DNA of 64,000 nt from Podarcis bocagei (lineage: Eukaryota). Location: the NCBI GenBank assembly GCA_964188305.1, contig OZ076890.1, one strand, 5' to 3'. The position numbers and the translations under genes were made by a program. The notes beneath the pieces were generated by a model. The model was not told the origin of the DNA, searched no databases, and saw only the letters and a program-made list of their open reading frames with translations. Shown one piece after another: positions 14,212 through 19,598 of the stretch. The stretch's first letter is position 1; the number at the start of each line of letters is the position of its first letter.

Positions 14212-14703
14212 AAGAATAACTATCCAGTATCAATGATTGCATAACTCAATAACTATTTATGGGATATCTAATCTGCTTTACTAAGAAGTTAACTAAAAGT
14301 AGTAAAGATGATGAGTCATTTATGGCATGATAAAAATAGCACTATAGGGGGTTACAGTATTCATGTTCTTCCTTCAAGGTTACAGCACAACCTTCACAAA
14401 CATTTAATGAGTTTATATTAGGGTCATATAATAATTTTATGACAGCATAAGGACAGATAAAATAAACCCAAAAACATGAATTTGCTGCAAAATAAATGTG
14501 ACCTTTTAAAGATGATATTATTATGCACATCTGTATTCCAGTAAGTAGTTTTGCAAGAAATGGGTTGCAAATTATGCTTCCTAACCCCAGCGGCTGAAAA
14601 TTCTAGAAATCATCATCTTTGAGGAAAAAGCCAACCAAATTAAAGGAATCATACTGACCACTTGAATGATAAAGCTATTTAAACTAAAGTCCACAAGACT
14701 CAC

Positions 14704-14865
14704 CTGTGCTTCTTGAGGTACTTGTGCTGCATCAATTCTGTCGGCAATATAACCAGTTAACTGTCGATCAATGAAAGCAAGAGACTCTTGAATTAACTGG
14801 AGGGTTTTGTCAATCTCTTGTGCAGAGTGGATACTTTGTTCAAGAACCTTTTGTCTCCTCACAGC
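14704..14865 (-). CDS. DMD: Dystrophin exon 30 (162 nt)
   Basis: tatttttcag|GCT GTG AGG; AVRRQKVLEQSIHSAQEIDKTLQLIQESLAFIDRQLTGYIADRIDAAQVPQEAQ; CAG|gtgagt. Confidence 0.97.
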
Positions 14866-14956
14866 CTGAAAAATAAAGGGAAAAGAGTATTAGCCATTCA
14901 ATTTTTCTTTAATGCTGTTAAAAACACACAGAAATTTCATACTGATACACAACCAC

Positions 14957-14995
14957 CTTTTTGTAAGATAAATTTCGTCTTTTTTTGCCAGCCAT
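14957..14995 (-). CDS. DMD: Alternative first coding exon of retinal isoform Dp260 (exon R1), 13 codons MAGKKRRNLSYKK
   Basis: aaacaaaATGGCTGGCAAAAAAAGACGAAATTTATCTTACAAAAAG|gtggtt. Strong Kozak context (A at -3, G at +4), in-frame upstream TGA at 15028-15026, phase-0 donor 91 nt before exon 30. Resembles the recalled human Dp260 N-terminus MSARKLRNLSYKK. Confidence 0.9.
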
Positions 14996-15350
14996 TTTGT
15001 TTTTTAAATAAATAACCACAAAAAGTCAAAATGCCCTAAAATTCCCTAAATAACCAAACCAAATAGTGAGGAATTCTATAGTGAGTAGAAGACTGCAAAA
15101 CTAAGTCCTGCCATTAGATAGTTTTGTTCATTCTGAAGCCTCGGGCAGCTCCTGATCCCATTATATATGTCAGGAGATTTCCTTTGGTCAGAACAAAGTT
15201 GCCGTCATCATAGTCCACTTACAGATAATCCACTGCAACAAGTGAGAGGGATGAAAGTGCTGTTTATAAAACAAACTCTCACATAGGATATAAATAGTTT
15301 CTTAGAGCCTGGATTAAATGGTAGTACTCTCAGGAATGATTAGAACTCTT
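14996..15350 (-). promoter_or_regulatory. Putative Dp260 internal promoter and 5' UTR
   Basis: TATATAA on the minus strand (15167-15161). CRX/OTX-type sites TAATCC (15226-15231), GGATTA (15311-15316) and TGATTAG (15337-15343). Lies immediately upstream of the R1-like exon. Confidence 0.6.
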
Positions 15351-18194
15351 AAATTTTGTCTTGACTCTTTATGGTTCACTCCTCCCCTTATTATAATATT
15401 TCTTAATGGTACAGCATTCAGCAAAATGTTACAAAAACTGGGGAAAGCAAGAGTCAGACTGTTCCTATTACTACTATAGCAAGTCACATTACTTTAAGCC
15501 TGCCCTATGACATTAGCGAAACCCCGCAATATGGTTACTAAGACCTTCTTTGGTTTTACATTTTCCTTTGCCCCCTTTTCATACTTAATAGTTTAAGATG
15601 ATGACACCTGCAATATTCAGCTTAGTTTTTCACCTTCTTTCATATTCTGCCTTCTCATAATTTAGTTTTATCTGCATTGACTCTGCATTATTCATTCTTT
15701 TAATAGGCTATAAACCTAACATTTCTATTCACTCAATAAACCTGGAGGTCAAGTCACACTACACATATTTCCAAGGCCATATGAAATGTAACCTTGAGGT
15801 CAAGGACTCGAAAGTAATGTTATGGAAAAAAAACTATTTTATAAAAGCATTCACCAACAGAAACAGAACAGCTGAACATCCTTCATCATTTCTTTTCCTG
15901 TGACGGTTCAAAATGGAATGTAGTGAATATGTCTTCACTCACATAGCAACAAATTGCTGTGTGCATTGTAAAACAAACATGGATTTCGGTGGTAATGGTG
16001 TTATGAGAGCTCACTTTGTCTTATATCCTGGGACACAGGACAGGATTACCTCAGCCACTTCAAATGTTCTGTCATACATCCACAGTGTATAAGGTACTAA
16101 TAATGTGATTAAAAAACCCCATCTAGTTCCTTTGTAACCTTCCAATCAATAAACCACAGAAAAAGGATATATGACTCAATGAATATATATCATTTTACAT
16201 TTTAATGAGGGTGTTATAATAATGCGGGTGTTTTTCAAAGGGAGAATATTTAATTACCAGTGTTTTTGATTCCTCCTGCCAGTTTTATCCACAATGAGGG
16301 AACACACTGGTCACAGAAGCATGCAGCAGTCGCACAAGTGTCAAGAGTTGGCCAACTCCTTTGTTAATGCTAATTAACCCAGAGAGTGATCATGTGGATT
16401 GTTGGCTGGCATCAGAGAGGAGAGCCTTTGGGGGTAAGAATTGTGAAGAGGGTTTATCAATGTCCTGTGTTATGCTAACTGATTATTAGGAGGGTTATGT
16501 GGAACTGAAGGGATTTGGATGTTCAAAAATAAGGGGGAAGATTAGTAAATTAAACTTGGTGCTTTGGCTCTTGGGAATTTGATGTTCTCATTTAAGTCTT
16601 CTGTGACCTGCCCGAAAATTACAAATATTTATCTTTCCACATTCACTACCTTTGAGGTCAGCCTCCTTACATTCCAACCCCCACCCCCTGAACATAACAA
16701 TTCACAGCTCAGGTTGTCAAAGAACTATTGCATGATTGCTTCCTGTGCAACCTGGTTGGTTGGGCAGAAAATGGGTATAAAACACTTTCTATCCCATGCT
16801 TTCTTTGCCCCCCCCCCTTTCTGCTATCCCCTTGTTTGCTGATGCCTACCTTTACAGCAGTGCTGTGTGCAGACAATATTTCTTTGGGCGGGGGGAGGGG
16901 GCAGTCAAGGGCAGTAAGCAGGTATATGGAAATGCTAGCTAAGAAAGTATTATTTTTTCTTAGTCTGTGCTGATTCTGTACTCCAAGTGTTCTTAAACTG
17001 CTGATTTATTTTATTAGACATCTTATAGTGCATTGGGTTTTAGGATTCCTCTTTTGTTTTGTTTTTATTCCAAATAAATTTTGCTGCCTTCTAAAGTGTG
17101 GTTCACAAGGGAAAATAGTTTGTTTTTCCATTTGTTTTCATGTTAATGTTCCATTTCTTTTGTTTTCTATTTATTGAATTTATTTCCATTTATTTAATTT
17201 AACGAACTTACAGACTTTTCAAGATATATTCATCCCAACATGGTTTACAAAGCAATGTACACCTATATATATATACAGCACTATTTATACAACATAGATT
17301 GAGTCTTTAAGGCCCATTTAAATTATATAAAGTCCTATGGGGCAGAGTTGGAATGCCCATAAGGCAGGGTGAAGCACCCACCTTAAGGAGGCAGAAGTGC
17401 AAGAGGCGGAGCTCCGTCCTCCCACTGCTCCTGCTGCCAGCTGAAGGCCTTCCCTCTCACAGACAAGAGGGAGGCATTCTAGCATGTAGCACTGCCACTT
17501 GTCTTACCTGTCCCCAGACAGAGAAGCAAAGCACCTATGCATTGCGGAACGCCCCAGTGGCAGAAATGGTGGCAGGGGTGGGGGGAGGCAGGATGTGGAA
17601 ATTCCCGTTTCAGCACAGGTGCCAAAATGGGACCAGCCACCCCTGCCACTGGGGATAAATCAGGTTTACATCTAAGCTACGCTCTACTTCCATTCTGCCC
17701 CATCTTCATCGTGAAACGGGGCTGCCAAATTTAAAGGAAGTGACCATTCACTTTTAATCCGGAAAGTGTCTTTCTTACCTACTCTGAGAGCTTTGGGTGT
17801 GGGTCCAGAATTGGCCTCCACAGTCACTTACAGACTCATTGTTAAAACCCTGTTTATGGAAGACAATCTTACTCGGTTATGAGTGATTGCCAAAGAAGAA
17901 GAAGAAGAAGAAGACATGTATGTAGATTTCCTAGAAAAATTGATACCAGGTAGTCCCTCTTATAAAAAAACATATAAAAAGACACAAAACACATATACAG
18001 AGAGCTGCTTCTGTTAATCGGTCCCTTCCAAAGCTGTCACAACTTTTGCTGGTTTCTTCTTGCGTCAACACTGTTGTCCGCATCTTTACAACACAGTATT
18101 TTATAAGACAGGTAACTTTACCTTTCAGCTCTCCTGTTAAACACAGTGTTTAAGAGAAAAGTATGGGGGAAGGAAATTATTTCTTAAAATGTAC

Positions 18195-18344
18195 CTCTTG
18201 TTGTAGCTCTTCCCACCGAGTATTGAACTTCTCTAGTTTTTCATTGATCAGTTCATCCAGAACTCCACCATCAGTTAAGGTCTGTGCCAACTCACGAATC
18301 TGATTGCGGTTATCTTCTGGGTGTTGCATTAATGTTCCCAGAGA
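18195..18344 (-). CDS. DMD: Dystrophin exon 29 (150 nt; not in ORF track)
   Basis: gtttcag|TCT CTG GGA; [50 protein letters not shown]; GAG|gtacat. Confidence 0.96.
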
Positions 18345-19280
18345 CTGAAACATCCATAAACTGTATTACTTGTTTTTGCCATTTCCCTTACACCAAACAA
18401 AGGAGCCTTCAAAGCTCTTGTTAAAATAAAAGAAGCAATAAACCTTACATTTCCATTAAAATAGAAGAATATTCATGAGAAAAATAAAGCTCATCACTGC
18501 AACATTTTCTGGCACAAATTATCTGAAATGTGACTAGGCAAACATTAACAAAGGCTTAGATACCACATCAACATAATAAACAGTGTGGCTATAATGTATG
18601 CTACCTTGCTGAATTGACCATCAGCACAACCAACCAATTCAGGTAACTATAAACTATTGAATTTGTGATGCTACTCCTTCATTTTTAAAAACAAGAATTG
18701 TCAATGTTTTTTAATAACTGGAGTGATTCTGGGACCTTTGAAAAAGACTTTTTAAGGCTTTTATTAAAACCTTGGGTCTGTCAGACATCTCTGCAGCAAA
18801 ACGAGGGAAATATGATAAATGTAAGGATCTAATTGTAGAGTACAAAAACCTGCAATCCTACCCAAGATTGCTTGGAAGTAATTGCCACTGGATTTGCTTA
18901 TATAGAGATGTGGATGTCTGTATAAGTTATTTGGGAGGGCATGTGAAGCTGGCTTCACAGGCACCAGACAAAGCATAAGTTTATAAAGCATTTGAATTAA
19001 ACATCTTTGTTTTTGTTGAGAAGACTACATTATTCTTTTTGACAGCTCCAATTCCACTCTAAGAACGCTGTGGCCTATCTGAACCCTGTGTGCTCATATC
19101 TTCCTTTAGTACATAGCAATGATAATAATAATTGAAAATCTAATGGAACACAATTCATGGAAAATATACATATGGGTGCATAGATCACAGCACACATTGA
19201 AGAATATCACACTTTGATTTAACATAGAAACTTTTTATTGGAAAGGTCTGCGTGTTCCTAACCAGAATGTCAGTACTTAC

Positions 19281-19415
19281 ATCTAGTGCTTCTGAGATCT
19301 CTTCTGTGCCTTCTTGAATATTTTCTGTTGCCCTGAGTTTTGATTCTACCTCATTCAACCATTTGTTTTCAACATCCAAGTATAACAATAATTCACGCCA
19401 ACATGCCCATACCTC
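19281..19415 (-). CDS. DMD: Dystrophin exon 28 (135 nt)
   Basis: cattcatcag|GAG GTA TGG; EVWACWRELLLYLDVENKWLNEVESKLRATENIQEGTEEISEALD; GAT|gtaagt. Confidence 0.96.
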
Positions 19416-19598
19416 CTGATGAATGAGTTTATAAAAAGAAATGAATTTTAATACAGAAATGCTTGAATTTTTTTAAAACTTTTTTTTTGCAAATAAAACG
19501 ACCTATAACTTATGCTGTTTTACCAGGACATGTGTTGTTGGGTTACCTATATAAATGCCACAAAAAAGTAAATAAAATCAGGTCATTTCAAAATTCTA

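Follow-up and report, generated by a model that had tools for sequence, protein, structure and literature searches.

The short open reading frame that immediately precedes exon 30 in the dystrophin gene (DMD) of this lacertid-like lizard is very probably the orthologue of R1, the alternative first exon of the Dp260 (R-dystrophin) isoform. It lies on the minus strand of the stretch of DNA that was analysed (64,000 nt, hereafter the window), within DMD intron 29, would join exon 30 in phase 0 and encodes a peptide identical to the N-terminus of dystrophin gene models from Crotalus and Pogona. The original prediction had read the unit as the first exon of Dp260 and this reading is borne out. R1 and the isoform it belongs to were known before; the exon is found here in one more tetrapod and is already modelled in other squamates.

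The coordinates of R1 and its neighbours are collected in Table 1. On the minus strand the start codon occupies 14995-14993, in the context acaaaATGG, with A at -3 and G at +4, and the thirteen codons that it opens end with base 14957; an in-frame TGA (15028-15026) is found 10 codons 5′ of the ATG. The coding part runs up to a donor, AAG/GTGGTT, whose GT is at 14956-14955 and which is off consensus at +4 and +5. The intron contains a long pyrimidine tract and, 24 nt off its acceptor, a CTAAT branch-point candidate; the acceptor of exon 30 (ttttcag/GCT at 14865) would receive R1 in phase 0, so that the frame is continuous from MAGKKRRNLSYKK into AVRRQK. All the elements that had been described beforehand, namely the ATG, the 13 codons, the donor, the 91-nt intron, the phase-0 acceptor and the upstream stop, were recovered at the positions given for them.

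Table 1. Features of the DMD locus around R1 in the window.
Feature	Position	Strand	Basis
DMD exon 28	19418-19281	-	tblastn
DMD exon 29	18194-18344	-	tblastn and RNA read joints 14864->18194, 18344->19281
GGATTA motif within conserved upstream block (cagtGGATTAtctgt)	15226-15231	-	alignments A1, A2
Conserved core-promoter/transcription-start block, ending ...AAATCTCCTGACATATATAATGGGATCAGGAG	15150-15199	-	alignments
Predicted R1 5′-UTR, ~157 nt	14996-15152	-	human R1 5′ end aligns to ~15152
R1 coding part, ATG + 12 codons, MAGKKRRNLSYKK	14957-14995	-	read and translated from sequence
Isoform-specific intron R1, 91 nt, GT...AG	14866-14956	-	sequence; homologous introns 84-130 nt in six loci
DMD exon 30, 54 codons, phase 0 at both ends	14704-14865	-	translation AVRRQKVLEQ...VPQEAQ
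DMD exon 31	about 10825-10712	-	tblastn

The identity of the flanking exon is given by the gene around it. Nineteen DMD exons (16-34) were mapped on the minus strand by tblastn with annotated squamate dystrophins, including that of Lacerta agilis, and counting from either end identifies 14865-14704 as exon 30, which excludes that it is anything other than DMD exon 30. Its peptide is the same as lacertid and Sceloporus exon 30 at 54/54 residues, and its 3′ boundary reads CAG/gtgagt. Exon 29 is its upstream neighbour in full-length transcripts, intron 29 being about 3.3 kb long. Compared with lacertids, the exons of the window match Lacerta agilis at 95.5% over 1063 residues, Podarcis at about 93.6% and Zootoca at about 92.7%. 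Exons 16-34 span about 56 kb (4963-60586, minus strand), with an intron 24 of about 12 kb, which makes the locus look compact here. Scans of intron 29 for tRNAs and Rfam families gave no match. In the same intron, reads and contigs of both strands pile up very deeply over a segment of about 78 nt (17797-17874), to about 4000 in the contig run. They have loose ends at either border of the segment, and a (GAA)n run is close by (~17893-17915); this segment behaves like a dispersed repeat expressed inside many transcripts.

The Dp260 leaders in print are MSARKLRNLSYKK in human and mouse, MSGKKMRNLSYKK in chicken and MNSKSHRNSSYKK in frog, and each of them runs into AVRRQK or AVRKQK (PMC1790709, Additional File 1). 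Measured against these printed peptides, the leader of the window is identical at 9/13 residues to that of human and mouse, which is the mammalian match that the original prediction had counted, at 11/13 to that of chicken and at 8/13 to that of frog. It fits the conserved pattern M-x-x-K/R-x-x-R-N-L-S-Y-K-K and runs on in the frame of exon 30, and the 4/13 residues that separate it from the human/mouse leader fall in the N-terminal half (MAGKKR in the window, MSARKL in human and mouse).

The architecture of the published systems is also that of the window. Published hallmarks of Dp260 are a first exon placed just 5′ of exon 30 and, between the two, a short intron specific to the isoform (PMC1790709), and human/mouse R1 (PMC3000234), like R1 of the window, lies in intron 29 and carries 13 codons ending in ...RNLSYKK, in phase 0 with exon 30. 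Human R1 measures 236 bp, with a 197-bp 5′-UTR and the 13 codons, and is separated from exon 30 by 105 bp (Kubokawa et al. 2010, PMC3000234), compared with 91 nt in the window, both introns being very short. A start-region block of the TAATGAGATCAGGAG type is common to human/mouse R1 (PMC3000234) and the window. Human R1 holds a cryptic 98-bp intron, reported to be primate-specific (PMC3000234). Transcription of human R1 is demonstrated, whereas R1 of the window is known from sequence. The chicken first exon, a genomic prediction, and that of Xenopus, obtained by RT-PCR (DQ831004), are the same 13-codon exon at the same position (PMC1790709). Published E1-E30 introns are 101-130 bp long (PMC1790709), a range that is widened somewhat by the 91 nt of the window and the 84-85 nt of the gecko- and amphibian-like contigs described below.

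How old is this exon? The original prediction had dated the internal promoter and the isoform at least to the amniote ancestor. The age is correct, but it is not a new inference: peptide, short intron and flanks had already been reported as conserved from human to frog, the frog transcript had been confirmed by RT-PCR and the promoter had been called a tetrapod innovation (Jin et al. 2007, PMC1790709). An amniote age is a weaker statement than the one in print. The restriction of dp260 to tetrapods is restated in a 2023 review (PMC10377302). Cartilaginous fish and squamates were outside the sampling of Jin et al. 2007 (PMC1790709).

Gene models that begin with R1 exist in squamates. With the region of exons 30-32 from a full-length snake dystrophin as query, a search of a protein collection led to two squamate proteins of Dp260 length, dystrophin isoform X9 of Crotalus tigris (NCBI XP_039185591.1, P0067; 2341 aa) and a Pogona vitticeps protein (UniProt A0ABM5FYB1, 2338 aa), the latter with a second entry in the same cluster (UniProt A0ABM5FY73, 2368 aa; the Pogona entries are also labelled P0134 and P0204, 2338 and 2368 aa). 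The three entries are computational gene models from other squamate families, and the exon 30 of each species differs from that of the window at 3 residues; all start with the 13 residues of the window, joined straight to the AVRRQK of exon 30, and their 2338-2368 aa are the length expected for Dp260. When the search was scored on Pogona residues 1-67, the leader was covered, among the representatives, only by Crotalus, Pogona and a guinea-pig model (MSGRKLRNLSYKK), and models using R1 therefore exist in Crotalus, Pogona and Cavia. The exon had been thought short enough to be missed by automated annotation. Since the Crotalus tigris and Pogona vitticeps models begin exactly with the R1 peptide, this expectation fails, and R1 is within reach of automated annotation. 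No lacertid Dp260-type model was found among the database representatives returned, which proves nothing because big clusters absorb short isoforms, as in a cluster where members of 956-1243 aa sit under a 3710-aa representative. Likewise, a representative search with exon 30 at 50% clustering gave no Dp260 isoforms, the matches being one full-length dystrophin and many prokaryote-style ORF fragments of intron readthrough.

Contigs of other species were reached through short ORF fragments that overlap exon 30, and their lineage was assigned by the exon 30 peptide; a word-index search with the 54-aa exon found four short ORFs, three of which led to squamate-like contigs and none to DNA of shark, coelacanth or lungfish. 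A homologous unit stands 5′ of exon 30 in all six of these other contigs, and ATG, leader ORF and GT donor are intact in five of them. The intact units belong to an amphibian-like locus (L001, leader MSGKSHRSPSYRK, 85 nt of intron to exon 30), a bird-like locus (L002, MNGKKMRNLSYKK, 130 nt), a mammal-like locus (L005, MSTRKLRNLSYKK, 109 nt) and two gecko-like loci that share the leader MAGKKRRLSYKK (L006, at 611-646, 84 nt; L007, at 886-921, 85 nt). The sixth, skink-like locus (L008) is without the ATG and has 105 nt of intron. The GTG-type GT donor is kept in all loci compared. The original prediction had staked itself on conservation in other squamates and birds, and conservation was found: the unit is present in bird-like and gecko-like contigs, and the peptide is the same in Crotalus and Pogona.

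The manner in which these units differ is informative about what is conserved. Between the window, the bird-like and the mammal-like locus, all codon changes in RNLSYKK are synonymous (CGA/CGG/CGC, AAT/AAC, TTA/CTG, TAC/TAT). Between the window and the gecko-like loci, the differences amount to two synonymous changes and an in-frame deletion of 3 nt, which removes Asn and yields a 12-codon R1. The amphibian-like locus differs within RNLSYKK, so that change restricted to synonymous sites holds for the amniote loci. Because RNLSYKK changes are synonymous only and the deletion keeps the frame, selection would act on the peptide and not on the DNA alone, which indicates, from these alignments, that the 13 R1 residues are themselves under selection. 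The R1 peptide is identical in lacertid-like, agamid and viperid sequences. The ATG context is AAAATGG in the lizard and gecko-like loci, with A at -3 and G at +4 (compared at window 14996-15004), whereas the amphibian-, bird- and mammal-like loci have CTGAATGA, a weaker context in which a TGA abuts the ATG.

Conservation is not limited to the coding part. No other run of invariant columns across the lizard, amphibian-, bird- and mammal-like loci is as long as the block at 15199-15150, which ends ...ATATATAATGGGATCAGGAG; in a second alignment this block is also invariant across the squamate-like loci. It includes a TATA-like TATATAA (15167-15161), and its 3′ part matches the primers for the 5′ end of human exon R1 printed in PMC3000234. 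Further upstream, a block around 15236-15222 with a GGATTA is common to the window and to the bird-, mammal-, gecko- and skink-like loci (L002, L005, L006, L007 and L008), the amphibian-like L001 being without a conserved GGATTA. This GGATTA (15231-15226) has the form of an OTX/CRX-type homeodomain core and is a putative binding site. With flanks common to amphibian-, bird-, mammal- and squamate-like loci, the region shows the sequence conservation that a promoter would be expected to show. Transcription of R1 would start near 15152, giving an exon of about 196 nt in all, or else some 25-30 nt 3′ of the TATATAA. The predicted 5′-UTR contains two short uORFs, out of frame with the main ORF, at ATG 15131 (MNKTI, stop) and ATG 15114 (MAGLSFAVFYSL, stop), and a third ATG, at 15161, is at or ahead of the predicted start of R1.

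Two other readings of the unit deny it a coding role. AT-rich introns often hold short, A-rich ORFs, and the R1 peptide is rich in lysine and arginine, so an ORF that resembles the Dp260 leader by accident has to be considered. In a six-frame scan of the whole 64-kb window, however, R1 was the sole 13-mer on either strand with at least 7 identities to the human, chicken or frog leader, and none of 30 block-shuffled windows attained 8/13 identities, compared with the 9 to 11 observed. R1 also has the homologous position and the homologous short intron found in seven other species or loci. Coincidence was already refuted by the shuffle test, the identical squamate models and the homologous units in other contigs, and we regard its probability as negligible. 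The other reading takes the conserved block as an intronic element that regulates the splicing or transcription of exon 30 or of the full-length gene, with the ORF incidental to it. Splicing signals are indeed expected beside exon 30, and sequence conservation does reach past the ORF into non-coding flanks. Nevertheless, the 39-nt pattern is codon-like, with its synonymous third-position changes and in-frame 3-nt deletion, and R1 transcripts are documented in human, mouse and frog, in addition to the gene models of Crotalus, Pogona and Cavia, which makes a purely regulatory element very improbable, if slightly less so than coincidence.

Is R1 still used as a first exon in this lizard? RNA from close relatives, of unknown tissue, was mapped on 14500-19500; it comprised a pair of stranded bulk RNA-seq runs, a single-cell run and a set of contigs, with a DMD exon depth of about 2-5x and at most ~12% of each raw-read run read. 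Exons 29 and 30 are joined (14864->18194, a skip of 3329 nt) by 3 and 2 reads and by a single contig, all from the minus strand by mate orientation; the contig, of 5336 nt, also joins exons 28 and 29 and extends past exon 30 toward exon 31. The single-cell run gave no signal on exons. At that DMD depth and in those tissues, the R1-to-exon-30 joint (14957->14865) was seen in none of the four runs and raw-read depth over 15001-15167 was zero. These reads, together with the lack of a lacertid Dp260-type model among the database representatives and the loss of the ATG in the skink-like locus, which makes loss possible, would fit an R1 that has ceased to serve as a transcribed first exon here and survives as a conserved relic, kept by recent ancestry or overlapping constraints. 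Against this stand the intact ATG, frame, donor and promoter block, and a peptide the same as in Pogona and Crotalus, two genera from a major squamate branch other than that of the lizard of the window. The substitutions in the conserved half relative to the gecko-, bird- and mammal-like loci are synonymous, and the RNA comes from unknown tissue at low depth. On balance a relic seems unlikely, although it deserves more weight than either of the non-coding readings, and a functional Dp260 first exon is preferred.

Some further observations concern these public data. Reads labelled with the same species all differ from the window at 14800, 18234, 18251 and 18297, and no DNA run contains more than 0.83 of the sampled words, none of the runs being the assembled individual; because of the four exon differences and this share, the public runs appear to come from close relatives or another population. 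An excess of contig depth at 14834-15167 was considered as R1 transcription (X13) and rejected, as it fits a match of about 22 nt to an unrelated contig, at a depth of about 60. That contig matches an A/T-rich stretch at 14993-15014 and continues with 149 unlike letters, with no splice signal at 15014. Another short match of a similar kind ends at 16692.

The skink-like locus deserves separate mention. The region L008:1705-1850, which occurs in two samples, still has the promoter block, GT donor and intron as well as the ...SYKK codons, and the frame traced back from the donor opens with a stop (stop-LAKRGETSYKK). The exon 30 of this locus is nearest to lacertid and Sceloporus models (48/54) and has ETDK and VPHEAQ in common with the skink Lerista. 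This lineage may no longer possess the canonical Dp260 start, and because the locus is without an ATG, R1 can apparently decay in some lineages. Together with the 12-codon form of the gecko-like loci, this raises the tentative idea, which we consider somewhat doubtful, that the Dp260 N-terminus is not uniformly retained within squamates. If this were true lineage-wide, some squamates would make Dp260 without the conserved leader or would have lost the canonical isoform, and the loss of the leader would offer a natural experiment on the importance of the 13 residues.

A model of how R1 would work can be put forward. The internal promoter in DMD intron 29, formed by the block at 15199-15150 and the GGATTA at 15231-15226, would start transcription about 160 nt 5′ of the ATG, and the resulting first exon of about 196 nt would provide a 5′-UTR and 13 isoform-specific codons. 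The weak, conserved GTG-type donor would then be spliced in phase 0, by intron definition, over the 91-nt intron to the ordinary acceptor of exon 30, and translation would proceed from the well-placed ATG. The product, of about 2340 residues, would lack both the actin-binding domain at the N-terminus and the beginning of the rod and would keep exons 30-79, of which exons 30-34 are the downstream part of DMD inside the window; the homologous squamate models have 2338-2368 aa, and a Dp260 product is expected to be of about 260 kDa. From the mammalian and frog literature and the squamate gene models, we infer that R1 is used in this species, that is, transcribed from the internal promoter, spliced and translated. 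By analogy with mammals, in which Dp260 is enriched in retina and located at photoreceptor terminals (PMC9896479), expression would be expected chiefly in photoreceptors, at their terminals.

For annotation, this means that the DMD locus of the genome should carry a Dp260-type transcript from about 15150, with a protein beginning MAGKKRRNLSYKK. For biology, the published tetrapod conservation of the Dp260 promoter and leader would be re-confirmed in one more lineage, and the identical squamate peptides, together with the synonymous-only change of RNLSYKK among amniotes, reinforce the case that the 13 residues are under selection.
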